Source: Phallusia mammillata
Lineage: Eukaryota
Direction of reading: 5' to 3'
DNA: 64,000 bases
Assembly (NCBI GenBank): GCA_965637545.1
Contig: OZ281501.1
Span: forward strand, 3,348,001 to 3,412,000
This document shows positions 6,167 to 63,532 of this stretch, in pieces. Made by a program: the position numbers and the translations under genes. How positions within the stretch are numbered: the first letter of the stretch is position 1; the number at the start of each line of letters is the position of its first letter. Under the pieces are notes generated by a model that ran no database searches, had not been told where the DNA came from, and saw only the letters and a program-made list of their open reading frames with translations.

Positions 6167-6673
6167 GTTTTTGTCTTCCTGTCAAACTTCATAACCAACA
6201 CATCTGGCCGGAGTATTTGCAAAAAAGTGGTCACTGTACAGTGTTATGATCTAGATGGCCAAACCTTGGGAAAGAAAGGAAAAATACTTAAGATGGTAGT
6301 AGCTACAGAACCTGTGAAATTCCGAATGTGGACATACCCTGAAGTTGACCCGGAAGCGTTTGTTCTAGAGCATAGAAATGGAAAAGTTTTAAACCTAACA
6401 CGCAAAACGCGAAAACGACCACAATTTTTGACACTGTCTAAAAATGGAAGCAAACCGGAAAACTTTAGTCCCGGCGATAAACGTTTTTTCAAAAATCATT
6501 ACGATCCTTTAAATGAGAAAACATATCTTATGCCTTGGCATCAAACAAAAAATAATACCTATTTCCAATGTCGTTTAAGACGTTCTTATGTACCTGAGTT
6601 AAGAGCAGGCTACAAACAAAACAGGACAATGGGTGTATACACTAAACAAACAAACGACACGCAATGCAACTGA
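6167..6673 (+). CDS. main coding exon of gene A: secreted basic beta-trefoil protein, IL-1-family-like (about 183 aa, 154 aa mature)
   Basis: Acceptor TTATTTTGTAG|, 168 open codons; begins with signal-peptide end VFVFLSNFITNTSG; strand pattern VQCYDLDGQTL / VKFRMWTY / FVLEHRNGKVLNL / FLTL / DKRFF / TYLMP / TYFQC parallels IL-1b CTLRDSQQKSL / VVFSM / VALGLK..LYL / LQL / EKRFVF / EFES / WYIST; six N-glycosylation sequons. Confidence 0.65.
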   Translation, partial: VFVFLSNFITNTSGRSICKKVVTVQCYDLDGQTLGKKGKILKMVVATEPVKFRMWTYPEVDPEAFVLEHRNGKVLNLTRKTRKRPQFLTLSKNGSKPENFSPGDKRFFKNHYDPLNEKTYLMPWHQTKNNTYFQCRLRRSYVPELRAGYKQNRTMGVYTKQTNDTQCN

Positions 6674-10740: not shown

Positions 10741-11516
10741 TCAAGCTAGATCCACGTCCCACATATCAACTCCCGAATGGTGTTCTGTCAAAACCAGCTT
10801 TGATTCGTTGCCCAGTGCAACTGAGAGTAAGGTTCCTGATCGATTATTCCACGTAGAGCTGGGATGAAGAAACCCGAAACTTGCTCCACCTGTCCGCGTC
10901 ACATTGAGGACAAAAAGCCGGGGATCGCTGGTGTCAGAGTCGACGTCCACGTCCAGAGGGTCGCCCCATTTGCGTTCCGGTGACAATTTGATTTCTTGGC
11001 TGTCGGTATCACAGACAACGTATTTACGCTTTGAACGTACTGTAACAGCAAACATAAACGTGAGTGGAAATCCTGGCCTGGTTGAGCCAAATTGCCATCG
11101 TATGATAGGGTTTCCGCCATCGACTATTCGGAGTCCCCCTTGTGCCCCCCAGTGCCTGCCAAGCGTGGCGTGTCGAACGTAGCAATCTCTTTCTTCTGAG
11201 ACCCCGGCTTCTAATTCACAAGCGTGAGTTAGGGTGACCGGAGTTTCGCAGACTGGCGAGCCTATGAAGTTCTGCAGAAAATCGGTAAAGTGTTGCGTAA
11301 CCTTGCACTTTTCGCGAGGTTTTGGACTCGTGGATTTTGTTTCTGTTTCATCACTGGTCGCCTTTAGATTCATTTTCTTCATATCGGCCACGCCCGAGTA
11401 ACGCCGCACCGTCTGTTTTACGGATTCCTCTTCAATTATAAAACTTCGTCCGTTTTCGGTTTTAGTCTCTAATCCACAATTTGCACGGGTCGCGAGTTGT
11501 TCTGTCTCGAGTTTGA
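10741..11516 (-). CDS. exon 2 of gene B: leaderless precursor with C-terminal IL-1-family-like beta-trefoil (272 aa in total)
   Basis: Longest ORF in the window; minus-strand acceptor TTTATATTTTTCAG| phase 1; C-terminal ~147 aa shows CYVRH, GFPLTFMFAV..KYVVC, EIKL, DPRLFVL, FLHP, LLSV-x7-LVL, DMWDV, paralleling IL-1b/IL-18 strands. Confidence 0.75.
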
Positions 11517-11580
11517 CTGAAAAATATAAATAAACAAACTTGAGCATGTGTTTATCACGGCACGCTCATAAATATAAATT

Positions 11581-29488: not shown

Positions 29489-30669
29489 GTAAGTCGGTGT
29501 TGTGTGACCTTTGTGCCAATGTTGTTTTTACAGCTTGAGTTTACTGTTTAAACTTTAAACTAAAGTGCACTTTCGTTAGTTACTTACAAGACTGTTTCTC
29601 ATAATTTGCTTTTTCAATCTGATAAGGTCCTAAAAGTTTTATTGGTGTTTTAACAATTTAGGGCTTTACTATTCACTTTAGGGCTTTTATAATTTGGGTT
29701 TCATAATTTTTAGGCTTTTAAACCTTCAGTTTTACAATTTAAAATGGTAAGTCATGTAAAGAAGTACTATTTTAGGACAAGTTTTTAATCCCTTTAAAAT
29801 GAACTATAAATATCGTATTTTAACCGTTCTTCATGATCAGTTAATTCAAAGGAACTTGAAACAGTCTATGAGCCACAGACATAAGTTAGTTCGTAAAATC
29901 TTGGTCATTCGTAGAGCCGGTATTTCCAAACGCCTCGGCCGGATATAAGACTGCTTTGATCACTATGGCCCATCTCAAGGGAATCTAAACACGGGCTGGT
30001 GGTCGGCTAGACAACATACGACGAACGTTTTGTACTTGGCAAATTATTAACCCGAATTCCGCTTAAACTAGAACTCCCATGTTCATAATCTTAGGCAGAA
30101 CCACAAGCTGTAGCCTAATGCAAAGTTGACTATTGCTACCCACAGTAGTTGTTTAAGCCACTGGTATCAGCAACATACTTAAATGTCACGATAACTGGTA
30201 AAGTTTGGCTGGGTGGGTGTTTTCGCGTTTGCTGTCAAAGTTATGTTTTTACAACTGTTGTTTTGACAGGTAGAGTCATAGCAATATTGTCGACGCCCTA
30301 ATACTTAGACCAAGAGTATGCTTTACCCCACTAACGGAAAAGTATGCTTGGATATGTTGAAGTGTGCATTTCCACCTAGTTGAAAAGTTTGTGGCATTCC
30401 ATTTGGCTGGCGATTGTTCGTCAATCAAAAATATTTTATAAATAGTGTTGTTCGCGACGTTTATTTGAAAGAAGTCATGCTAGGTCGGGCATAACAGCAA
30501 CCCAATGTTTGCTCAAAGGGACCCCACACCTCTCCAACCCCAATTCAACGCATAAATATAACTATAGTGAGCAAGCAAACCATCTATAACTATTCATTAC
30601 CGGCAAACGTTGAATTTTTTGAGTTCAATCCTTTTAACAACGTCATTTTTTTTCAGTGACGTCATCGTC

Positions 30670-30745
30670 ATGAGGATATTACTCGCGCTCGTTGCGCTTG
30701 GCTTGTGCTCGCTGGACCATGTCGACGCCCAGGGACTGACTTCAG
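30670..30745 (+). CDS. COL15A1/COL18A1-like: multiplexin (collagen XV/XVIII) signal-peptide exon MRILLALVALGLCSLDHVDAQGLTS
   Basis: Acceptor TTTTTTTTCAG| at 30656, classic signal peptide (VDA|Q), donor CAG|GTAAGA phase 1 matching downstream phase-1 exons. Confidence 0.85.
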
Positions 30746-48000: not shown

Positions 48001-49091
48001 TTGATGTAAACCTAAAGACAGTTTTAACTAAGATCTTATTAGGACAACACAATCGTTAGTATTGGGCTTCTTCTATGACCCATTTCAAGCAATGTTTTTT
48101 AATATAACTGCCGGTCAATTATTTTTGATCACACTTCAACTAAAGGGTCGATATTCTATTTGAACCGTGGAGTCTTTATAATTTAATTTCCTTATACCCG
48201 GTAATGTCGCAACCTAGCTGCCAAAGCTGGGTTTGTTTTGAACCTCTAACCTTTCCTGAGCCTCAGTTCACGCCTCAAACAGTGACGCCATGTCCAATGA
48301 CTACTCAGTTTGCAATTCGTACGAAAAACTCGAATTTTAGCCTCAAAGAAGCACTACAAAGAGTTAGTTGATTCATACACCTATTTTTGCCACATGCAGC
48401 GCTATGTACCCCAACAACTGTAATCCTTGCTAATTCTATCAGAGCTTTGCTTTTCCATGCATAATTGCGCTGGTCGTATATTATGCATTAGTAGCAATCG
48501 TTACATTGCCTGTAGTTAGTAGGAACTAACTTAAATCTAACAGCATCTTTGGTGACTCTTATATATTTACTAGAATACATTGGAATGGTAATATATTGTA
48601 AAGGTGTGCTTACTATACTTTTCCATGCTGCATTGTAGATTTTATTACTGCAGTCATTTGATAATTGATCATACAATCCATCTTTTACATTCTTTTAATA
48701 AGTTTACTTGAGTGATATTAATCTATTTTGTGTTTGCTTTTTTTCCATTCCTACTTTTCTATTTCCATTTCTCTTCTCAATTTTCTTTCCTTGTGTTCTA
48801 TTGTGTCAAAAATCCTGACTAAATTAATTACTCTGTTCTTGTAATTCGAAATTATATAAAACGCCGCATTTTGTGCGCTCGTATTGCATCCCCTTGTCAA
48901 ATTTAAACGCTTTTCTGCGTTCGAACATGCATTGTCATGTCCGAATGTTTGTGCCTGGCTAAAAATATCCAATAACACTTAACATCGAATATTAATTAAT
49001 TGACCCGCTTCTATCATTTGTGGCGCTGCTTTCACCTCTGCTGACCCCCTTGAACCCCGCTTTCCATTATCCCCATGCATGCCATATACAG

Positions 49092-49370
49092 AACCAACCG
49101 CGTTTGACCTCACTACTGAGCTTACTACGAGTTCCTCGACTATGCCTTACCCGACGGCTGATTGCAACGTCGAATTTTGCCTAATCAACTACAAGGAGAT
49201 AGTGACCAATGACACACCGTCGCCGGTTCGGTGTACGGCCTTGCGCCGACTCCACGACTGCATGCTAAACTCGCCGTCTCACTGCGCAACTGCAGACCCC
49301 CGCTACATGCTTATTGATGAACGGAGGCAGGATTCATACAAGACATTCCAATGCTCGCGTTTCGCATCAG
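49092..49370 (+). CDS. cassette exon of the multiplexin: Thr/Ser/Pro linker plus RGM N-terminal-like six-Cys domain
   Basis: CTGAC branch-like motif and pyrimidine-rich tract, acceptor ATACAG|, donor TCAG|GTTGTC; 279 nt, phase 1-1, in frame with the 30745 donor and 50390 acceptor; C-x4-C..C-TALRRLHD-C-x7-C-ATADPRY..C. Confidence 0.7.
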
Positions 49371-50389
49371 GTTGTCATGGCAATGCCGAATGACGTCGTC
49401 GTTTTTGTTGTCTGTCTTCCCACACACTTGTTTTTGCTCAGTTGTGTGTTTTTTGTGTTCAGTTCGAGCTACTACAACTTGCAGTTGTGTGGCTGGCAAC
49501 TGTAATTTGAAACACTTTGCATGTTAAACGTTACAGACAGTTTAAATCGGACTTAACTATCCCACAAAGACCTATTTTTAAATGTAATGAGTTTCAAATT
49601 AGGTTATTCAAATCTACCTATTGCAATGATTAAAATCTTTCCTAATGGTAAAAATTTGTCATTTAAACTACACGATTTGGGAGTAAAATTAATGAACAAT
49701 TTTTGAGCTGTAAACAAACGATTACTTACAGTTGTGGTATTATATTCAGACATGCCAAGCCTGCTTGTCCTCAAAGAAAATGCATGACATTATCTGAACT
49801 GGCCCTGTAATTTTGCAAACCTTACCGGAACTTGCATGTTTAAGTTCCGTACCTACCCTGTAATTTGTGCTGGCCGTTTATGCATGCATGTCTGGTGTGT
49901 TAATTTGTGTCTGCTAGCCAAAACACATTCCACTGAAACTGAACTAATGGTTGTCACAATGTGGTACACTGTTTTTTTGTAACAATTTCAAGTTTGAGGC
50001 ATATTTGTGACAGATATATTTTGGTACCATAAGTTGTCTATCAGAGTCCACTAGGACACTTGCTACAACGGTTTCAATGGCAGTCAATCTTATTGTCAAT
50101 TAAACCAACAGGCAATATGAGCACTTCAAAAACATAAGGAACAAAGCATGTTGTTTTGTAGGCATATCTTCCAGTGTTTTTGCTTAAAATGCTCCATTTC
50201 CACAAAGACTTTGGCGAGAAAAAAAAGTTTTTCTCCATACCATGTATTTCATGCCATTTTTAGTTAACTAACCAAGCACAAATCCTCGGTAAAATTTGGC
50301 CAGTAAAGATATTTAGTAGACAAAACTCATACACTACAAATCCTGTGTACCTCTATTTCTAACTGCTTCTGTGATTGAATTCGTTCCAG

Positions 50390-50518
50390 GTGTGAGCCAC
50401 GATAAAGTGGATTTTATAGCTGCAATACCAACTCCTCTCGATGCGTCAATTTCCTATGTTCGAGGCCACAACGGATTTCCTGCCTTTGAATTCATGAGCA
50501 ACGGAAAGACAACCATCA
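50390..50518 (+). CDS. COL15A1/COL18A1-like: multiplexin TSPN/LamG domain exon 1
   Basis: AG|..|GTAAGT, phase 1-1; VDFIAAIPTPLDASISYVRGHNGFPAFEF is a typical multiplexin TSPN start. Confidence 0.9.
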
Positions 50519-50558
50519 GTAAGTGCTACATCTTACAACGTGCATTAATAGTTTAGAC

Positions 50559-50734
50559 CAGTGGTTCTTAACCTTTTTTCCTTGCTGCACCCCTTTCAAA
50601 TCACCAACCAACTTTCTCACACCCCCCTGGATTTTTGTGCTTATATAGAATAGACCTAACCAACCTTAATGATTCAGCATCCCCGCACCCCCTAGGAACA
50701 GTTCTCGCACCCCTTGGGGGTGCATGCACCCCTG
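50559..50734. mobile_element. hAT (Charlie-like) MITE with shortened right TIR
   Basis: Left end CAGTGGTTCTTAACCT, repeated GCACCCC motifs, 8-bp TSD GTTTAGAC at 50551-50558 and 50735-50742. Confidence 0.8.
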
Positions 50735-51543
50735 GTTTAGACTAAATGAAATTTTGATCTGTGGATATGCAACTAATTTTTAAAAAACAAGCTGTCCTAT
50801 AAGCATAAGCAAAGTTTTACCTCGATGTAATTTCTCAAGAACCAACACAGTCAAATAATTATAAAATATTTCTTTCATATAAAATAATTTGTAAGCAAAA
50901 TTTGGGCTTTATTAGGAAACACATGTCATTTGTTAAACACGTTTTGACACATGATACTGGCTAATGGTGTTGGAACACATAGCAGTTAGTCGACCCAAAA
51001 TGCGGTTTTCCGATCTCCAAATTCCTGTGAATGTTATTTTCTTTCCGGTATTCGGCAATGCAAAAACAATTTAGAAACGCAAAAAGGAATCTATACAGCC
51101 GCACCTGCATGTCAATTACTGTGTTAAAAGTCTCTTGCCGACTTGGTGGTCGAATTTGTGGCGCAACAGCACAGTTGAGCGAGTGCAGGCGCCTGGCCCT
51201 TGTGTCCATGATAAATACTCCACGTGTGCGAAATGGAATCTGATGCAAATACGAAAGTGGAGAGCTTGAATCCAGTGAACTGGAACCTTTCGTTCGTTCA
51301 ACAGACTGAACTCACGCTAGAACTTGCCCGCGAGGTTACGCACCCGAGGCCTAAGACCCGTAGATCCTATTATTTTGTTTAAACCTATGTCCAACGTCAA
51401 AATAACGTTTAACTCGATTTTTTGTATTACTGAGTTATTCATTTTCGTTACAGATTAATATTTCGGGTTTAAACTACCGTACTTTGAATGTTTAAGTCAT
51501 GCAATTTTTTTGCACTTAGATAAAAAAAGTAAATCACTATAGG

Positions 51544-51723
51544 CAGTGGTGGGATTCAAATTTTTTGTCAGCCGGTTCTATCACAAAAGTCATATTTTTC
51601 AGTCGGTTCTCTTACAAAAGGTCCATTGACTGTAACCAGTAATGCTAACCGGTTCGCTGATCTCATAAAATTTCGTGAGACGGTTCTATAGAACCGCTGC
51701 GAACCGGCTGAATCCCACCACTG
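51544..51723. mobile_element. hAT-type MITE
   Basis: Perfect 15-bp TIR CAGTGGTGGGATTCA / TGAATCCCACCACTG; TSD ACTATAGG/ATTATAGG (7 of 8). Confidence 0.9.
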
Positions 51724-52017
51724 ATTATAGGACAAATTTGAAAAATAGCACACACTTCTAAAATCTACTTGTCAAATCATGTTGTAGTATTTAGTATTAG
51801 GCGCATTTTTATACATTTATGTGATAACTTTAGATAAATCATTGAAATTGTTTCTTAACTTGGTGTTCTCGGAAATTAAGCTTGATGCATTGAACTTGGT
51901 CAAAGATGGCAGTGATGTCAGTTTGCCTGTTAACTTTTTTGAACTTGCCATTTGTGATTCCAAATGTTTTTAACCAACTTTACCCCATTGTAACAAGTAT
52001 TCTAAACTTCTTCTCAG

Positions 52018-52238
52018 ACGAACCAACCGCTGATCGATTCCCGAATGGCCTTCCCGAAGAGTTTGCCATTCTAGCTATTGTCAACCCACGGACTCGGGAG
52101 TGTGGATATCTTTTCGAAGTCAAGGACAAAAGCGGATCTAAGACACCCCTGGGAGTCCAGATCTGCCCGCTGGAGGGCGACTCTGAGCGCATGAAAATCA
52201 GTCTGTTCTGGAACAATGACGTCATCGCCAATTTTAAG
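52018..52238 (+). CDS. COL15A1/COL18A1-like: multiplexin TSPN exon 2
   Basis: FPNGLPEEFAILAIVNP..GYLFEV..LGVQI..ISLFW; phase 1-0. Confidence 0.93.
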
Positions 52239-54299
52239 GTTTGTTGTGGTGATTTTTAAGTTACAATTTCTCAACTCCGAAACTAATGAGACCTAATTTG
52301 TTTGAAAATAGTGAATGGAAGTTGAAATTAGTTTTTGAATTTTTGTCGGTTCATTTTTTTCTAATATGTGTACACATAGAATTTTGATTAGCATTTTTTT
52401 ATAAAATATGGCTTTTCATGTAATTGTAAAGTATAGTATAGGAATATACGAATACCGGGTCAAATGCAAAATTTGGTTATTCCCGTTAATTATGGCTTTT
52501 TGGTTTCAACCAATTACCCAAATTCAGTCTTGCTTTCCATACCAAGTTAAACCATTAAACAAGCAAGTCATGGCCATGCCGGTTTTCCTTTATAAGCTCA
52601 GCCCTAAAGGTCTAGACAAAATTGCCACCTTTGAAAGCAATTTACTACGTTGTTCGTCTCCCGCTGACGAAGGTACCACGTTTTTAACTTCCTCTGCCCG
52701 GCCGCACGTCTTGCCAATTATCGCAACCTCTAACTCTCCCAGGCTATGAAGTGATTACCTTTTCACCTCGCTGTTTAACCCGGTTTTCACGTGTGAAATC
52801 GTGAACGTGGTAAAGGCTTGTCTCGAGGGAAATTCACTGGTTGCGTCATTGGCCTTGAGATATGAGACATGATTTTTAGAAAATGTAATTGTTTCCCTCA
52901 AAAATGCAGGAATATGCACAGCTACTTAAGAATAGTCGACTAGAATCAAAGAAAGGCAACAAATTGTCTTGTTGGGTAAAAAAAGATGAAAAAATATTTT
53001 GACAAAATTTTATGTCCTTTGGTATTAACCATTATAAATATTCCACATTCGAAAGTAAAGATACAAAAATATAGTTTTTACTGTTAATAACAAAACTTTT
53101 ATATATGTATCATAGATTTATTTTACTCATAGCATTAACCATCTATTTGCAAATAATCTATGATGTTTTCAAATGTCGGTCTAAGAGGGCAAAAGTTTAC
53201 CACACAATAACACCACATGTTTTATCGTTTAACAAACAACAAAGTCAGTCTTGTATTTGCTTCAGTTGGTTCACCTTTACAGTAAGCCAAAGTCGTTATG
53301 TTTCCCACACTCCAGCCGCAAACAGTATATTTGCGGGTAATTCTGGTAATGTTTCATCGTGTGTGCACCAGACGACGGCATTAAACCGTGCGCTGTCATT
53401 TGGGTTTGACAAATGAAATGTAAATATTCCGACTGACGTAGAAACTAGTTGTGGATATACGGATTGTCCAAATTGGATGCATTTTTTTCCTACTGCGTTT
53501 TGATTATGTTTATTATTACCATCCTGTTTTTGATTCTATTTGAATAAGGGAATAATACAAATTTACAGTTTGTCACAGAAACCTTGGCCACTTGCATATA
53601 TGTTCAAAATATTGTTTATTTTAAGAATGGTCGGATAGCTTGTCTTTAACCTGCAATAACCTTTTGTTTAAGAATAAACCCTTTGGGGTGATTACTTAAA
53701 ATGCCCTGAGCGATTAGTCAAAATAATATACAAATGTATTACATTACATGAAGAAGAGCAACTAAAACGATTGTATTGTGTGCTTGCTATGTTAAATCAA
53801 CAGCTTTGCAGACGGGTAGGAGTTGACATTGCTTAGAGGTTTAATTATTGACTACAAAGAGACGGTTAGGCAAATAGCACAGCGGTCCGGGAGAGGCTGT
53901 TAACTTGTATGCTGGTTTGTTGAATGGCTACAAACACTAGTTATATCGCCACTTGAACTATGTCTCGGTCAATACATTAACAGGTTGTTACATTTAGGAC
54001 ATCATACGAATGCTTTGTAGCAAATTCACAAATTGACACTGCAATCGTATGTCAGAAACACATGTCTTTTGTAATTATATTATTCGAACATCTATGAAAA
54101 GGGAAAAAATGTTTTATCTTAGATTGTGTTCTGGATCCATGTGTTTGTCTTTAGTAAATAAAATGTTTTGTCAAAATGTCTAATATACTTCGCTTATTAT
54201 AACATGTCAATGTATTTCATATGTAATCACAAATATATTGTTACATTGCCAGTTGAAATGATTTACCATCTATTAACTGCGCATTGTTTTACTACACAG

Positions 54300-54488
54300 G
54301 TGGACAACTTTGTCGGAAAATTCACTCGTCTTGCCTTCGAAGTTCGCCGTGATCAAATCGCTCTTTACTTCGACTGCGTGAAGTTAGATGACCAAGTCGT
54401 GATGAAGAAGTCAACTGGCAACGATGTAGACATCCCATCGGACGGCACAGTCTTCCTGGCTGGTAGCACACTCGCCAATAGGTTTATT
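54300..54488 (+). CDS. COL15A1/COL18A1-like: multiplexin TSPN exon 3
   Basis: VDNFVGKFTRLAFEV..IALYFDC compared with COL18A1 AFVGQWTHLALSV..VALYVDC; phase 0-0. Confidence 0.93.
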
Positions 54489-54859
54489 GTAAGTATAAAT
54501 GTTGTGTAATTGTAGGTCATCTTTCGTAAAGGGGGAACATATCTTTTTCGTTCGTTTTTTCCGTATTAAAGGGTTTGTTCGTGTTATTTGGTCAAGAAAA
54601 GTGCTTCAAACTTTTTTAAATTGACTTATGTGACAAGTATCTTTCTGAAGTTGGTCTATGTAAAATGCAATTCACCCACATGCCTCCGAAACGCGAAAAT
54701 TAAAAAAAACAGCTATACTTGCTATTGTATTAACACCCAGTGTATTTTTATCTGCTACATTTTGTCGACAAATCATAAATGGCATATGTTTTTGAGAAAC
54801 CATCAAAAACATTTCGCAATTTCAGCTTCCTCAAATGCATTTACTTCGTTACATTTCAG

Positions 54860-55198
54860 GGTTCTTTGCAAGAGTTAGAGATTTTGTTTGACCCCAAGAA
54901 AGCGGAAACGTATTGTCTTCCTTCCCGCGCGTTGAGGTCCAGTGACACTGAAGGTAGTGGAGCTAGTGGAGACGGATCAAGCGATGTTGATGCTGAAAAA
55001 GATGATGAAGAAAGTACTGAAGAAAACAAGACTGAAATCGATGAGCCAACTGAGAGTCCTATGATAATCCCTAGTGAAGAAGCGGAGTTTACTACTACCA
55101 CGATTCTGAGTCCAACCACTGCGTTTGTAGAGGTTGAAGAGGAATTAATTCACCCCCGCATTGCACACGTGACCCCATTGACTGAACCAACGCATGAG
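54860..55198 (+). CDS. COL15A1/COL18A1-like: multiplexin TSPN end plus acidic Ser-Gly GAG-attachment linker
   Basis: GSLQELEILFDPKKAETYC then EGSGASGDGS and an E/D/T-rich tract; phase 0-0. Confidence 0.93.
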
Positions 55199-55873
55199 GT
55201 AAACTTGAAATTGTTTTAAACAGGTTGTAACTTAGTAGCAATAATTTAGTTCTAGTAACTTTTCTCCAATAAAGGATCAAATTAAATTTTTATAAATGTT
55301 GGTAGGCCAGAAAGAGTTTTTTTGGGGAACTAACTTGTGAAGTACTTCCTTTTTTTAAGACTATTGATTTTTAAGACTATTGTTTTGCTGTGGTCGCCTC
55401 AGACATAGATTTGGGTTAAAACATTTAAAATAAGTAATCTGGCGATTAATTGCTATTCAGAATTACCATCTAATTTATCTAGTGTTATACAATAAAGATA
55501 ATTAGTCCTTAAGGAATTACCCGCTTTTACAAGTGGTTTCCAAATCTGCTTCAGAATAACAATACACCATTGTAGTTAAATGTGTCAAATACAGCGTTAT
55601 GTGGCCAACCGCATATTCAAATTTTATCCTGTGACTGGAATAACTATTTCACACAATTTCGTTCCAACACACACCTTTGCAAACCGCAAAAATCGCATGT
55701 GGTTAAACATGTGTCTGTTCTTTGACAGTTTAACCTTAGTGTAGTTGAACTAATTGCAGCATAAGTGAACAGCGTGTTATTAAATTACATCCTATGTGTT
55801 AGAGTATTGTGTAGTTTTGTTATTTTGAAGAAGATAATTTGACACTGAGACGTAATTGTGATGTGTTTTGCAG

Positions 55874-55940
55874 AGTTTGGTTGAAGAACCAGAACCGGTA
55901 CCTACAGATGATGTTGAAGTTGAAGTGAAAACAGTCAGAG
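55874..55940 (+). CDS. COL15A1/COL18A1-like: multiplexin linker exon (SLVEEPEPVPTDDVEVEVKTVR)
   Basis: TTTTGCAG|..AG|GTATTT; phase 0-1 bridges to the first Gly-X-Y exon. Confidence 0.85.
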
Positions 55941-56158
55941 GTATTTGAATTTTTTGTCTGTAAAATCATTTTGCAAATTATGCTGGTGATTTGGTTGGTG
56001 AAAAAAAAAACGATTTCACAACTGTTAAAGTTGGATCAATGAATATGGAAAATTGCTACAATGTACAAACCTCGTTAACTATATTTGTTTGTACGTTTGA
56101 AAATGTCTATGTTTTGTTTAGTTTTAATACTTTTAAAAATAATACTGTCATATTTCAG

Positions 56159-56209
56159 GTGAAAAAGGAATGAAAGGCGAACCAGGAGTAGGACTGGTTG
56201 GACCTAAAG
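56159..56209 (+). CDS. COL15A1/COL18A1-like: collagen exon GEKGMKGEPGVGLVGPK
   Basis: Gly-X-Y, AG/GT, phase 1-1. Confidence 0.9.
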
Positions 56210-57817
56210 GTAATGCAAGAATTTTTAACCAGTTATCCAAGAAGTATAAAAACCTTTTGGTAAATCTCCTTGGTTGAAACGAAATAAGTCAGTTATAGGT
56301 GACAGAAATATGTATTTTACCGTTTCGAAAGTAACCTTATTCAAATAGAATGATTTTAAAATTATTTATTTGAGATAGGGACTATTGTATTGCATAGAAA
56401 ATAGATGCCGTTGTCAAACCCTTAAGGACCAATAGTGGGCGTTCGTGTTTGTTAAGATTAAGAACGGCTGACAAGTTAGAAGGTTTTTGGCATAAAGTTA
56501 GCACTGATGGTCTTGTGCCACTGAGAGCATTTTGTTTCCTATTTCCCTCCCTCTATGGGGCATTCCTGTTCTGCATACCACACAGCGAAAGGTCTCCGAC
56601 GTGATTTTCAAAGCTCTTCTAACGCAATTTGGGGCTTGGCTTTAAGCGTTGTAATACTGCCTGTGCACTTTCCTGGTGTGGCCATAAACTTTACCTGGAT
56701 TGCAATAAAAACGTCGTTAGCCCATTTTGCACGGGAAAATTGTTTCATAAAAACGTACACGCAAGTTAAGCAAGAAGTCTTCAAATGCTTTGCTAACCGA
56801 CAAAAGCGTTTACTTTTTGTCCTTATTTTCAACCTAAAGCAGATGATAGACATTTTAGCATGTAGGATTTCTTAATAGAGATGTATTTCTTTGTATGTTT
56901 AGAGGCGCCCATAAAATCGAAGAAGCAAGGCAATACTCGAAAGTAATTTGTGCTAATGACACAAAACGCTATTTGAATCATCAAACTGATTTACACCCAA
57001 AGATTTGACTTTTACATTTAATTAAGATAAAATTGAGGGCTATGTTTTTGAGCTGGGAAAGTTTATGACTAAGCAGGTTTGTTTAATGTTTCAAAAAAGC
57101 GCCATCCTACAGCTGATGCCACTTTAGGGTGTGGTCAATGTCGAGGCCCCAAATGGGTGTTGACAGTTACCTTTCAGGCGACGAGACTCAAAGCGGTTTA
57201 CGGTTTTGTTATTGGAGGGTTTGGGGGAAGTAGCAACCAAGCGAGCCCTCGGCCTGACAGTCTGGCGGTGCATCAGACGCCATAGGGCCCTTGTGGCGAG
57301 CGCAAAAATTTCCGGTCGAAATTTGATGTCTGCTGCGTTAACCGTTGCAACACAGGGTTAAGTGCCTGGTTAGCTTAACCGACAACAGTTGCGCATTGTT
57401 GTGGGGCATTAACGTGGGGATTGCGCGTAAGCTTAGGATCGGCCAAACCGCTTTGCACTTACACTAGTTTGAGTTAAACTTAATTGTTCAGATTTTTTTT
57501 ACAACTATTATGGCGCTTTTACACGGCCTGAAGTGTCTGTAATCTCACTTTTAAGTAGCATGGCTCTTGAATGGTTACTGTTTATGTTAAATCCAATCCG
57601 TTAACTGAAGATTTTCTGGTGTTAGCAGATCAAATCGTCTAGTGTGTAAAATATTTGGCTGCCAAAAAATTGTATGTGGATAGAACTATTTTTTTGACCC
57701 GGAATTCAGTTTTTTTCAAATTGTAAAATTATATCTGATTGTAGCGAAGTTATAGTTGAACATACATTTACATTTTTGTCTTATACAAACCGACTTATAC
57801 AAAACGTTATGTTTTAG

Positions 57818-57915
57818 GTGCACAGGGTGATCGAGGTACTGATGGAGCAGATGGAGAACCTGGTCCCAAAGGAGAGCCTGGAGACGTTGGACTGCAAGGA
57901 CCCGAAGGACCACAG
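57818..57915 (+). CDS. COL15A1/COL18A1-like: collagen Gly-X-Y exon
   Basis: GAQGDRGTDGADGEPGPKGEPGDVGLQGPEGPQ; phase 1-0. Confidence 0.93.
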
Positions 57916-58068
57916 GTAAACTAATAAACTTTCAGTTGATGTATATTCGAAAAATTATCAGTTTGAATAGCTTTCTATTTCTTCAAACCTCTAAAGGAAA
58001 TCTACCACTAAATGTGCAAAATAATTAGTACTGCAGCATATACGTAATGCATTTTTTCTGTCTAACAG

Positions 58069-58095
58069 GGTGAAGCTGGCCAAAAGGGTGAACAG
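58069..58095 (+). CDS. COL15A1/COL18A1-like: collagen 27-nt exon
   Basis: GEAGQKGEQ, CAG|..|GTAAGA. Confidence 0.9.
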
Positions 58096-58280
58096 GTAAG
58101 ATGAATGTGATACAATCGTTTTCTGAAATTTACCGAAGATCGTAGAAAAAAATATTTTCAGTGACAAACATTAACACATTTAACCTGAATAAAAATGTGA
58201 AAGTAGTGTTTAAAGAAAAGTGAAATTTTCGGTTAAAGATAGAATGATTTAAAATGAAATTAATTGACCTGTATTTTTAG

Positions 58281-58373
58281 GGTGAGCAAGGTATGAAAGG
58301 AGAAAACGGTGTAGCTGGTGAAAAGGGTGACAAAGGAGAAGATTCGGTCGTACCAGGCTCTCCTGGACCCAAA
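58281..58373 (+). CDS. COL15A1/COL18A1-like: collagen Gly-X-Y exon with interruption
   Basis: GEQGMKGENGVAGEKGDKGEDSVVPGSPGPK. Confidence 0.93.
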
Positions 58374-59294
58374 GTAAGCCTCTTTCTTTAAAGCTTACTT
58401 GTTTTGAAATACATTTTTACCTTGGAAAGTTTCCTTATAAACTGAAGCTAGGGCAGCGATAAAAAGGATTTGGCTTTCTTAACAAATGTGTCACCCAATT
58501 TGATTCAAAACTTTGCAAAAAACATTCAGCTTGTGCTCTGACAATAGCAGCTAAATGTGTCGTTAACGTATAATATATCACCTGTGTCCAATTTATTTAT
58601 CTGATACAACCAAGTATTAAATGAACACGATGTTGAGCAAGTATTGGTGTCAATCTATCACCCATCGCTTGTTTGGCATCGTGCCGTTGAAAGACGATCG
58701 TCATCGACAAGAAATAGTCCAAACGTATTTGCTTACTTGGCGAAACAAGTTAGAACACACGTAACCTGTCGTGTGACATGCTGGAACTATGTGGGTCACA
58801 CTCCTAGTAAAACCGGGCCTTTCTCAAACAAGATCTAAACCTGTGTGCCCAATGTTTGCCCTATCTCCAACCAAACTATATTTGCACTTATAGTAAATTA
58901 TAATGTGCTCTTTACTTTTCGTGGTCAGTCCGTAACTAGGCCGTTACGTTCTAAGTACAGAAATAGCGCCCGTGCTTACTCAAAGCGGTAAAAATAACGC
59001 AAGTATTTGAAATGGTGGACATACCACACATGCCAATGTCGGGGTTAAGAGTTACCAACCATTGACACAAAGTTAAAATTTATCTCCGTTACGTCTGGTC
59101 AAATCCAATAGAAGTCATTTTTTACAATCCGACCACATGTGTAAGAATGATAAACTTTTAACAAACTTTTTTTGCCAGCACCACATAGCAATAACCAAAA
59201 ATATATTCATGAACATCCCATAAATGTTACTAATTTCTAAAATGTTACAAATTTATTTCATGACCTTTAGTTAATCGTTGTGCTTTTTGTAAAG

Positions 59295-59384
59295 GGTGAA
59301 GTTGGAATTGGTATTCAAGGCATCCAAGGTGAAAAGGGTGAAAAAGGAGAAGCCTCGATTATTCCAGGACCGCCTGGTGCTGAT
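59295..59384 (+). CDS. COL15A1/COL18A1-like: collagen Gly-X-Y exon with interruption
   Basis: GEVGIGIQGIQGEKGEKGEASIIPGPPGAD. Confidence 0.93.
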
Positions 59385-59830
59385 GTAAGTAGAATTTTAC
59401 ACGATTGTGTTTTCTACCCGTTAAGCCAAACTTATCCTTGCTGAAATTCGAACCCACAACCTCAGTATATCTGGTGAATACGATCTGCATAAACTATGTC
59501 ACATATGTGCTACTGAATCGACCTAAATCGACAACATGTTCATATTTTCCATTAACTAGCAGTTAACTGTGTATTTGTTAAGAACTAAACTCCAAGTGTA
59601 AAGTTTAGACTGCTCTACAATGATAAAAAACATTGCCCCTTTAATCTGTAATCTTCGTAGGAAACGATTTCTTAACCCTATCGTGTGACAGTTTGCTGAG
59701 TAAACAGAACTTTAAATCCAAACCTTCCGGCATTAATCCTCGTCTTGGAAACCAGCTCAGATAACTTGTGCTGCCAAAAATCCGCCAACGGGCTCGAATT
59801 TCTTGCGGTAAAACTTGTTTTTCTTTGCAG

Positions 59831-59857
59831 GGTGCTGTTGGGCTGCAGGGCGCCAAG
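59831..59857 (+). CDS. COL15A1/COL18A1-like: collagen 27-nt exon
   Basis: GAVGLQGAK with consensus splice sites. Confidence 0.9.
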
Positions 59858-60899
59858 GTAAGATCTCCTGATATATGTTGTTTATCCGTTTGTGCATTTT
59901 CCATTACCACCTAACATAGTCTAAACTTTTAGCCTGACTCTAAATTATGCAGTGTTAAACGGCATTACATCCAAAGGCCAAAAATGTACACGTTTGAACA
60001 AGAAACATCATTGTAGCCTCAACAGTTTGAACTTTGCTTTGTAGTGTTACTTGTGTAAACCTAATTTATCTTGTTACCATTTGGGATGTTGTGACCGGAT
60101 TTTGCACCCATCGGTTGTATGTAATAGCCACCGCAAATGGGATAGTTAGGTCACGACCATATTTCCTTCTAAAGCTTATCTAAATTCCCGGCTACCAGCC
60201 AACACAATGTGCCATGGAGATTAACTTTAAGCCCAGGTTCAACAAACGTGCCAAGCCATTTGGGTTTGGGAGAATATTCTCACGTTAACATAAGAGGTCA
60301 TTTTGAGTTGACACGTCTAAAGGTCTCTCCGCATTCTTTTCGACTTGTATCGTTATGAGAATGAGATCGAATTTGAAATCAAAGCTTCGGAAAGAAATTA
60401 AAGTTTCATATGTCGAGTGGACACTTGAAAATGCGGCTAGCCGTTCGTCGATTTGTGCTTAGAATTACAACGCCTTCTTACAAGTGTTGCCATTATAGCG
60501 CGCATGGTGTACGATTACGACACTTTAGAGATATTCCAAATTGACCATTGTTTGAATCAACATCGTACGTAAATAAATGCCAACGAACTTGACTTTTTTA
60601 ACATTCAATATTTCATTTGGACTAAACCAATTTCTTTTAAAGAGAAGAGTGATTTTTTTTCTTGCGAAAAACAAAGTTGTTTCTGGTCGAAGTTTACAAC
60701 AACAATCCCAAATGGTTCTTTTTCAAACAAAGCCTGAATTTGGCCATAAATTTGGTAACAATGCAACGAAAAATGATGTCTAATGTGAATTCAGGCGAAT
60801 CAAACCTGTTTTTATTGAAACTTAAGCCTGGTTCAAACAATGATCATAACATTGAAGTACCCAGGGATGAGACTAACTTGCTGTATTAATTATTTAAAG

Positions 60900-60962
60900 G
60901 GTGAACCCGGCGAAGATGGAGAAGATGGTGAAGACGGTGATGACGGCGAGGATGGAACGAAG
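60900..60962 (+). CDS. COL15A1/COL18A1-like: collagen 63-nt acidic exon
   Basis: GEPGEDGEDGEDGDDGEDGTK. Confidence 0.9.
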
Positions 60963-61413
60963 GTGTGCTTGTAGTTTATGTTTAATGTTCAGTTATAGAA
61001 ACGTACCAACACTAGCAACTCCCACGCTTACGTTATGGGTGATGTGTGCAAAATAAGGTTGAATGCCCTTGAATGCCTCACCTTTGCTACAAAAAAATGC
61101 TTTGTAAATCGTATAAGATAACAATATGTATTTGGAAGATTTAACCTTTATGTATTTCGCATACTAGTACAGTATTATACACTGAAGACAGTGTACACTG
61201 TTGCAACCTATGAGGTCTGATCAGTGCAGCTGGTGGTCAGAGGTAGGCCGAAACAGTGAGCACTGTCTGCAATATTAGAATGGTACTTTTTCCAAGAAAT
61301 ATATTAAACTGTTTGTTAGACGGTTTGTGCGTTATCAATTCTACTGCAATTTAGTTAGCTTTGTTACAATGAGATGTTAAAATATGGTCATAAAACTTTC
61401 TCCCATTTTTTAG

Positions 61414-61485
61414 GGTGATCGTGGCCACCCTGGTCCAGCTATTCCAGGTCCTCCAGGTCCACCAGGACCACCAGGCGCTCACCCG
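61414..61485 (+). CDS. COL15A1/COL18A1-like: collagen Gly-X-Y exon
   Basis: GDRGHPGPAIPGPPGPPGPPGAHP. Confidence 0.93.
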
Positions 61486-61667
61486 GTATGTATTTACCAA
61501 ACCAAAAGACACCCTAATTTTTTTTTAAAGCCACGTTATATTACAGTCTAGTTTAAAATAGTAAAATGTTTTAATCTCTTTTCATACAAAACTTTACCAA
61601 AACCCTTTATCAAATTATCATTTTTTTTACTCAATGCCCAACTAAATTGGTTTCCTTCTTTGTTTAG

Positions 61668-61706
61668 CGAACGGCTTTCGTTGACATGGAAGGGTCAGGA
61701 ATGGAG
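61668..61706 (+). CDS. COL15A1/COL18A1-like: non-collagenous GAG-site exon RTAFVDMEGSGME
   Basis: DMEGSG motif conserved in vertebrate collagens XV and XVIII; phase 0-0. Confidence 0.92.
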
Positions 61707-61872
61707 GTATGAAAACTAAATACAATCAGATATTTATGTAACAAATATTACCAGTTGTGTTTGTGTGTAAAAAACAAAATATCGTATGTGTTCGTGTCTG
61801 AAACCTAGCAATATACCAAGCAATGCCATTCATGCACAACAAAACTATCAGTTCTAATTGTATTGTAAACAG

Positions 61873-61986
61873 GGACCAGCTGGCCCACCTGGCCCACAGG
61901 GACCACAGGGCCCTCCTGGACCAAAAGGACCCGCTGGCCAGAACGGCACAAGCGTCAAAGGCGACAAGGGCGAAAAAGGCGACACT
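61873..61986 (+). CDS. COL15A1/COL18A1-like: collagen Gly-X-Y exon
   Basis: GPAGPPGPQGPQGPPGPKGPAGQNGTSVKGDKGEKGDT. Confidence 0.93.
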
Positions 61987-62308
61987 GTAAGTCCGGATTA
62001 AGCAGTTTGTTAGCAAACAAATTCTTTACTCTCGAGAGAAAAATGTCTGTCGCACTTCACTGGGCAGAAAATTGAAAACGAAACCACCCAGAAGAAATTG
62101 TAGTAAAACGTTTTTAGGCCTCACTTTGGCGTAAATATGTCAACTTAACACATGCAGGTCACGGGGTTAACGTTTCGTCAAATAAGCCATTGGTGTTGGT
62201 GACTACATAATTTGTTGCTGTCCCCGTTGGGAAAACCTTAATTTAAATACTACAGTAAAGCAAAACATTGCAACATATTTGAAATAAATAAATTGTTTGT
62301 GTTTTAAG

Positions 62309-62380
62309 GGTGAGATTGGTTTGATGGGACCTGAAGGCCCACAAGGCCCCCCTGGAAGGTCTGGAGTGGATGGATTGAAC
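62309..62380 (+). CDS. COL15A1/COL18A1-like: collagen Gly-X-Y exon
   Basis: GEIGLMGPEGPQGPPGRSGVDGLN. Confidence 0.93.
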
Positions 62381-63139
62381 GTAAGTAAAAGACTTCAACT
62401 ACAAATATATAACATCATCTCTTCTATCTTTTTTTCCATTTTCAAGCTTTTCTCTATAGGTGAAATAAATTTATTACCAGTTTCTCTGTTGTGTCTATTG
62501 TTTCTTTCTTCATTCAGTTCGAAAATTTGCTTCAACGTGTAGTATCTCATTTACACAAAAACAAAGATCAATCTGAACGTCCCTCTCCTTTCGGTTTTCC
62601 GCGTCGTCAAAGTTTCAATTTTGGTTCAAGGGATGGCACACCTTACTCGGTACAATTTCTTTCTTTCCAACCTTCTGTTTACCTTCTTCCCTAACTCTCT
62701 CTCTTTTCTTTTGTGCTTTTTTCTCGTCACTTCTCTCGCAGCCGGGTTGGGCTTTTCGTGACGACCATTTCAGCGATTCTCAAACCAATTTTGGGAGACA
62801 AAAACGCGTTTATCGGCCGAAACCCTTTGGTCTTGGTGGCCCCGGAAGCACCAATCTTGTTTCCACAAATGACATAGGAAATCCGAGGGTATGGTGTCGA
62901 CTTCTTTTCTCTTTTACTGTCAATCTACACTACATTCAAACTTCCCTATTATCATTATGCTTGACACTGAAATACTTTACAAAACTTTGCAATTGTTTTC
63001 ACAAAATTGGCATACATGTTACCTCCTTTCAATTTCATGTTTCTTCATTTATGAAGATGCATACTGGATATCGAATTTTATTTTATAGATCTAACATATA
63101 TTTGACATGTAATTTAACACAGGAAATACTTTTAAACAG

Positions 63140-63181
63140 GGTGAAATGGGACCACCTGGACCAGCTGGCGTCGGTGCTAAG
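63140..63181 (+). CDS. COL15A1/COL18A1-like: collagen Gly-X-Y exon
   Basis: GEMGPPGPAGVGAK. Confidence 0.9.
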
Positions 63182-63444
63182 GTAAATCTTTTTCCTAGGT
63201 CTTTGTTTGTGTAACAACTTGTCCACTTTGTTGTGTTAAAAGCAGCTTAATCATTTCTGTTAAAAAACTCCCAAACAAAGTATAACACATGGAGGCCTAT
63301 ACTATAAAAAGGGAGATTTTTATCTATTGCAAAATTGTATGAGTTTATCGAAACATTTTTACAATTATTTAACTAGGTAATGTAATGTTGATGAACAACA
63401 AGGAAATTCACAACAGTATCAACACCTTGTTTGTTTCATCTTAG

Positions 63445-63532
63445 GGAGAACCTGGCGAAGATGGCAAAGCAGGCGCCCCCGGGCCACCTGGACCCCCAGG
63501 CGTGTGCGCAGCCAAATCACATATGCCAACAG
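63445..63532 (+). CDS. COL15A1/COL18A1-like: collagen Gly-X-Y exon (gene continues beyond the window)
   Basis: GEPGEDGKAGAPGPPGPPGVCAAKSHMPT, donor CAG|GTAGAG; no stop codon or endostatin domain in the window. Confidence 0.9.

Follow-up and report, generated by a model that had tools for sequence, protein, structure and literature searches.

Near its 5′ end, a collagen gene of the sea squirt Phallusia mammillata contains an exon whose product is very probably homologous to the N-terminal domain (RGM-N) of RGM proteins. The host gene is a multiplexin (collagen XV/XVIII), the exon is carried in every transcript seen, and the residues through which RGM proteins contact BMP are replaced throughout the tunicate family. 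The reading that we narrowly favour is a tunicate-lineage docking module, derived from RGM, whose remodelled surface would serve another partner. No other RGM N-type domain outside the RGM proteins came up in the searches run. Databases leave it unannotated, with Pfam calling only collagen, trimerization and endostatin in the protein, and the searchable literature contains no description of an RGM-N–multiplexin architecture, as the initial annotation of this DNA had also supposed.

The host collagen gene and its additional exon

The window (the whole 64,000-nucleotide stretch of DNA that was analysed) covers the 5′ part of the collagen gene on the + strand. The gene continues beyond the window end, and its trimerization and endostatin domains are encoded outside the window. 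The encoded protein, P0001 (CAB3232608.1 / A0A6F9DAB5), is recorded as a “collagen XVIII homolog” of Phallusia mammillata. The features are as follows:

30670–30745 (+): coding part of the signal-peptide exon, residues 1–25 of P0001; ends in phase 1
49092–49370 (+): exon for the stalk and RGM-N-like domain, phase 1-1, residues 26–118 of P0001
49092–49162 (+): S/T/P-rich stalk, about half S/T/P
49163–49354 (+): six-cysteine three-helix domain with predicted RGM N-terminal fold, 64 residues, Cys1 to Cys6
49283–49309 (+): loop following Cys5, with the beginning of helix 3; counterpart of the RGM “RGD loop” and His106, unconserved here
49368–49376 (+): weak 5′ splice site CAG/GTTGTC, used in RNA
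50390–50518 (+): TSPN exon 1 (RNA joints, BLASTP, fold match)
52018–52238 (+): TSPN exon 2 (RNA joints, P0001 alignment, frame check)
54300–54488 (+): TSPN exon 3 (RNA joints, P0001 alignment, frame check)
54860–55198 (+): end of TSPN and acidic/Ser-Gly linker exon, candidate glycosaminoglycan site
55871–63532 (+): small exons for the linker end and the interrupted Gly-X-Y region, limits approximate

Pfam searches of P0001 return the trimerization domain (PF20010, E 1.5e-8), endostatin (PF06482, E 1e-63) and collagen repeats, and no RGM_C match; the protein ends in endostatin. TSPN receives no Pfam call in P0001; the segment aligns with fish col15a1b at 30% identity (BLASTP, E 3e-24), and its model matches the TSP-1 N-domain and collagen IX NC4 in a fold search (E about 1e-10). 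The initial annotation had placed the domain directly before TSPN in a multiplexin, and the TSPN, Gly-X-Y, trimerization and endostatin assignments all agree with this. Acidic Ser-Gly motifs in the linker are candidate glycosaminoglycan sites. At the 5′-end, P0001 aligns by tblastn at 100% to 30670–30744, followed by the donor CAG/GTAAGA. Expression of collagen XVIII in Ciona is placed in the notochord, nerve cord and endoderm by work cited in PMC5612238.

The additional exon (49092–49370, +) is 279 nt long, is bounded by an AG acceptor and a GT donor, and is in phase 1 at both ends. Its coordinates, ends, phase and position between the signal peptide and TSPN are exactly those originally proposed, and its translation likewise gives a T/S/P-rich stalk and then a Cys-rich domain, with six cysteines spaced 4/17/8/7/22. 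This pattern occurs once in the six frames of the window and in none of 100 shuffles. When the exon is included, a frame check on the joined exons gives 298 open codons, 294 of them identical to P0001. The S/T/P fraction of the stalk is 0.54, 0.39 and 0.42 in three full-length proteins, a composition that suggests a likely O-glycosylated spacer. The stalk motif A-[FY]-D-[LF]-T-T (window 49092–49125; P0022, P0011) is common to Phallusia, Ciona and P0011, and the rest of the stalk is variable; other stalks carry D-P-V-[SA]-[ST]-T-E.

Elsewhere in the window, short interspersed repeats are found in the TSPN introns at 51543–51723 and 50568–50737. The first of these is MITE-like, with matches in many different transcript contigs and a very high summed depth. 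Two long open frames, at 6167–6670 (+) and 10744–11565 (−), have no Pfam match.

Inclusion of the exon in transcripts

The exon is present in 18 runs from five studies, all with small, transcriptome-like assemblies; none of these runs is on record as RNA, and their transcript status is judged from the look of the assemblies. The predicted junction 49370>50390 (GT..AG) is found in transcript-like contigs from three of the four runs aligned to 48800–54700, representing three studies. These contigs run on to 52018 and 54300 over GT..AG introns, and the flanking intron is without depth in the contigs that join 49370 to 50390. They begin aligning at 49089 and carry approximately 190–230 nt more upstream sequence, as expected if the preceding exon ends in CAG, as the one at 30745 does. 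As P0001 also joins its signal peptide (residues 1–25) directly to the domain exon (residues 26–118), the contig extension and the order in the protein together lend indirect support to the junction 30745>49092. A strong acceptor-like site is located ahead of the start codon at approximately 30658 (window 30560–30669), and the transcript contigs hold approximately 100–140 nt more 5′ sequence than 30658–30745 accounts for.

The exon was initially described as optional. The in-frame part of that description holds, as skipping leaves 205 open codons in a stop-free frame, but actual skipping was not observed: every transcript seen includes the exon. The skipped form was seen in none of the Phallusia contigs, two Ciona models and plankton transcripts, in a type of data (contigs) that drops rare variants; the Phallusia stretch aligned, 48800–54700, begins downstream of the 30745 side of the skip joint. 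One run from which the exon is absent (X19) was discounted as skipping evidence, the gene being covered there only by low-depth fragments. A skipped isoform is somewhat less likely than not.

The donor of the domain exon is weak. Only one of the eight orthologues scored has an A at position +3, whereas the Phallusia gene has it at 16 of its 18 other donors; in seven of the eight the donor score falls near the bottom of the range of other donors. Ciona and two more loci likewise have a donor without +3 A. Because the orthologue donors are mostly inferred and come from related sequences, this pattern is a lead only; a conserved weak donor would hint at splicing regulation. The donor is non-consensus in nearly all orthologues (window 49368–49476; L001–L005, L007, L010, L013–L015). 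The 100 nt after it contain 27 TG/GT dinucleotides in Phallusia and 29 in L001, against 3–22 in 18 other introns of the gene, a richness that resembles regulated exons.

Two candidate short forms were rejected. In the plankton transcript contig L009 (174–596), the signal-peptide exon is spliced to the domain exon and followed by intron read-through, so that the predicted product of the contig as read is a short secreted protein whose only domain is this one. Its later joint is without AG and lies on a 4-nt microhomology, and it is a single contig, probably a partly spliced RNA or a chimera. The second candidate was a GPI-anchored short isoform made by read-through of the weak donor. The Phallusia tail has 7 residues, and other frames are equally hydrophobic; read-through tails look hydrophobic in two or three orthologues, not consistently.

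Distribution of the domain and its relationship to RGM-N

An exhaustive search recovered 13 further domain proteins, all from unannotated contigs and three of them nearly identical to one another; P0012 and P0013 were excluded from the set as repeat artefacts. A word-seeded homologue search with the exon gave no matches. All six cysteines are invariant in the 14 sequences, with a family spacing of 4/17–21/8/7–8/22. The full-length Ciona protein XP_078489240.1 and a marine plankton transcript share the order signal peptide, stalk, domain and TSPN, and six other genomic loci (L001, L002, L003, L010, L013 and L014) have TSPN exons downstream of the homologous exon. Every locus checked has a phase-1 AG/GT donor after Cys6. 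Identity is 41–47% in the domain versus 26–38% in TSPN, and the third codon positions of the domain are far more diverged than the first and second, for which purifying selection on the domain appears to be the best explanation. A tree of the domain sequences gave no resolved branching. The acceptor used for the domain exon by the Ciona RefSeq model (L013, 11416) is without a pyrimidine tract, and the older Ciona model XP_018668678.1 begins within the domain; the 5′ annotation in Ciona may be imperfect.

In Saccoglossus, oyster, human COL15A1 and fish col15a1b, the signal peptide leads directly to TSPN (PMC10381214 supplement). The echinoderm models examined begin inside TSPN. Because the hemichordate, oyster and vertebrate collagen XV proteins are without the domain, the insertion looks tunicate-specific in a comparison that covers these four proteins. 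The earlier proposal of a lineage-restricted insertion with symmetric phase is supported within that comparison.

An AlphaFold2 model built on the orthologue alignment has three helices (pLDDT 90), and RGM chains rank first in its comparisons. Foldseek rows 1–11 are all RGMB or RGMC chains, the top ten with TM 0.70–0.74 at E 0.2. In a Foldseek-independent search of 48,161 chains, RGMB (Z 9.4) and RGMC (Z 9.0) are the only ones to exceed Z 8, the next fold reaching 7.2, on a scale where values below 13 can be generic for a small helical bundle. Among Atlas clusters, the model matches RGMA at TM 0.77, neuritin at 0.60 and a DUF19-like cluster at 0.56. Model residues 5–69 align with RGMB 53–121, with the first and last cysteines in register, and the predicted model superposes on RGM-N with an rmsd of 1.6–2.6 Å over 56–70 residues. 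The cysteine spacing is also RGM-like, as first noted, with 22 residues instead of 21 before Cys6.

Sequence-based scores are lower. The Pfam RGM_N family (PF06535) matches nine of the 14 members, always under its 24.2-bit cut-off (best E 5.5e-4; 12.5 bits for the domain exon, 19.3 bits for P0006). Queried with the exon itself, with three orthologues and with two profiles, the PDB sequences gave no RGM match at E up to 10, and Atlas feature searches gave weak rows only, with DUF19 at 0.77 among them. The domain could instead come from another six-cysteine helical module of the neuritin or DUF19 type, which would make RGM function uninformative. Its 15–23% identity to RGM, the matches of the model to the neuritin and DUF19-like clusters, and the appearance of DUF19 both among the feature matches and as the single Pfam hit outside RGM_N (one of 14 members) speak for such an origin. 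However, RGM is clearly best in every comparison, and the NRN1 Pfam model matches none of the 14 members. Details shared with Ciona RGM point the same way: Arg before Cys3, “AL” after Cys3 and Tyr at Cys2+4, together with (numbering backward from Cys6) Asp/Asn at −19 and an aromatic residue at −16 and −2. We regard a non-RGM origin as improbable. Each line of RGM evidence falls short of its own formal threshold and no single score is decisive; the high probability that we give to RGM-N homology comes from the agreement of the profile, the cysteine spacing and three structure libraries. The initial preference for an RGM-N-like fold over Frizzled or neuritin is supported.

Compared with the RGM N-domain, the tunicate domain has the same three-helix bundle and cysteine arrangement (4/x/8/7/21–22), with Asp/Asn at −19 and an aromatic residue at −16, and differs in having one residue more after Cys5 and in being without the RG[DN]LxxH epitope. 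The protein that carries it has no RGM_C domain with the GDPH site, to which neogenin binding belongs in RGMs, and no GPI anchor, and is instead a secreted collagen. Ciona retains a separate, normal Rgm gene (PMC10605842). Neuritin/CPG15, a small GPI-anchored protein (PMC6502786), and DUF19-type domains have a similar helical bundle with a poorer fit.

The proposed binding face and the collagen XVIII parallel

In RGMB, BMP is contacted by a loop (R100-G101-N102-L103) and by H106, a residue of helix 3, which crosses the BMP fingers; the RGMB substitutions G101R, L103E and H106R impair BMP2 binding, and RGMC G99V/R and L101P result in haemochromatosis (PMC7354924). The motif RG[DN]Lx[YF]H is kept in RGMs from hemichordate to human, Ciona included (sequences from the PMC10605842 supplement). 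Counted backward from Cys6, RGMB R100, G101, L103 and H106 correspond to −21, −20, −18 and −15, and the register is fixed by the Asp −19, aromatic −16 and −2, and Ile −13 that the tunicate domain retains. These four contact positions are among the most variable columns of the 14 sequences. None of the 14 holds Gly −20, Leu −18 or His −15, and only the D and Y/F equivalents of the epitope are kept. At −18 most sequences have a charged residue (E, D, R or K; four of them Glu) and Phallusia has the single Pro, while three sequences have Arg at −15, so that some tunicate substitutions resemble binding-dead RGM mutants. As the G101, L103 and H106 equivalents are never kept, BMP binding in the RGM mode is unlikely on this alignment. 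The BMP-binding or BMP-trap role first proposed for the exon is therefore not sustained, each of these residues being needed in RGMB, and the change from RGD to TAD, which had been treated as minor, sits inside the binding epitope.

A BMP, GDF or TGF-beta-family ligand could still be bound through a shifted or co-evolved interface, with the collagen as a trap or presenter. The predicted fold is that of the BMP-binding RGM domain, the helix that crosses the BMP fingers in RGM, helix 3, carries the conserved tunicate residues, and three copies per trimer would add avidity. An alternative, less likely register places an aromatic Tyr/Phe on His106. The same slot holds a Wnt-binding CRD in vertebrate COL18A1 (PMC6801662), and GDF15 binding can be engineered into the RGM scaffold (10.1101/2025.09.03.673894). 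In either register, however, the Leu103 knob is lost (in the alternative one it is Asp in 13 of the 14 sequences), and Gly101 is never Gly. E, P and R occur at places matching the impairing L103E, RGMC L101P and H106R mutations, and the contact columns are highly variable where a binding epitope should be conserved. Binding of such a ligand appears unlikely.

The family has (near-)invariant residues of its own, namely Glu at Cys1+3, Arg before Cys3 and Met after Cys4, and on helix 3 Arg −17, Lys −10 (Lys/Arg) and Arg −9. On a helical wheel of helix 3, positions −17, −14 and −10 share one flank, and −9 points to the buried side. From these conserved residues beside the variable BMP-contact positions, and on the wheel instead of coordinates, we infer a binding face that was rebuilt and selected for another partner. 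These residues also admit a structural role without a signalling ligand, in chain-end association, TSPN packing or collagen cross-linking. The invariant E, R, K and R could make internal or inter-chain salt bridges, Arg −9 is on the buried face, and the exon appears constitutive. On the other side, other multiplexins assemble without the domain, its linker to TSPN is of low confidence in a two-domain model (pLDDT <50 at 71–78), and all six cysteines would be paired internally if the domain folds as in RGM; a purely structural role thus seems rather improbable. Heparin binding was also considered and rejected, the core not being consistently basic (8 K/R versus 8 D/E in Phallusia).

Our preferred reading remains the docking module. 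An RGM N-type exon, probably shuffled from Rgm, would have entered the gene in phase 1-1, behind the signal-peptide exon and ahead of the TSPN exons, in a tunicate ancestor and been maintained as part of the main transcript. The product would be a secreted collagen trimer anchored in the basement membrane, with three copies of the domain at its N-terminal tip, held out by glycosylated stalks. Each copy may act as a protein-docking module through the rebuilt helix 3 face, with invariant Arg −17, Lys/Arg −10 and mostly Phe/Leu at −14. It would bind a partner different from the canonical wrist pocket of BMP; the likeliest target would be an acidic patch, whether on a secreted factor or on a protein of the matrix or cell surface. 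As a natural variant of RGM-N in which the scaffold is retained and the BMP epitope exchanged, the domain is useful for asking about other binding partners of this scaffold.

COL15A1, COL18A1 and Drosophila Multiplexin share with the sea-squirt protein a signal peptide, TSPN, an interrupted helix with acidic Ser-Gly motifs, trimerization and endostatin; the stalk and six-Cys helical domain ahead of TSPN are extra. In the long isoform of vertebrate collagen XVIII, a disordered segment is followed by a Cys-rich module and then TSPN. The domains concerned are DUF959 and a Frizzled CRD, which is restricted to certain isoforms and binds Wnt3a (PMC6801662). Frizzled has no match in P0001 or the Ciona protein, and the 18-kb intron contains no candidate for a Frizzled or second Cys-rich phase 1-1 exon. 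The parallel is positional, not homologous. Both proteins present a disordered, glycosylated segment and a Cys-rich module of signalling-protein type before TSPN, whereas the tunicate module has 6 cysteines instead of 10, is unrelated to the Frizzled CRD in fold and origin, and is carried in the dominant transcript. It is a long shot that tunicates and vertebrates each independently made a morphogen regulator of collagen XV/XVIII, the vertebrate one using Frizzled for Wnt and the tunicate one using RGM-N for a TGF-beta-family ligand with a new surface and weak-donor-tuned inclusion. In each of these sister chordate lineages, the slot ahead of TSPN would have received, independently, a Cys-rich module from a signalling protein.
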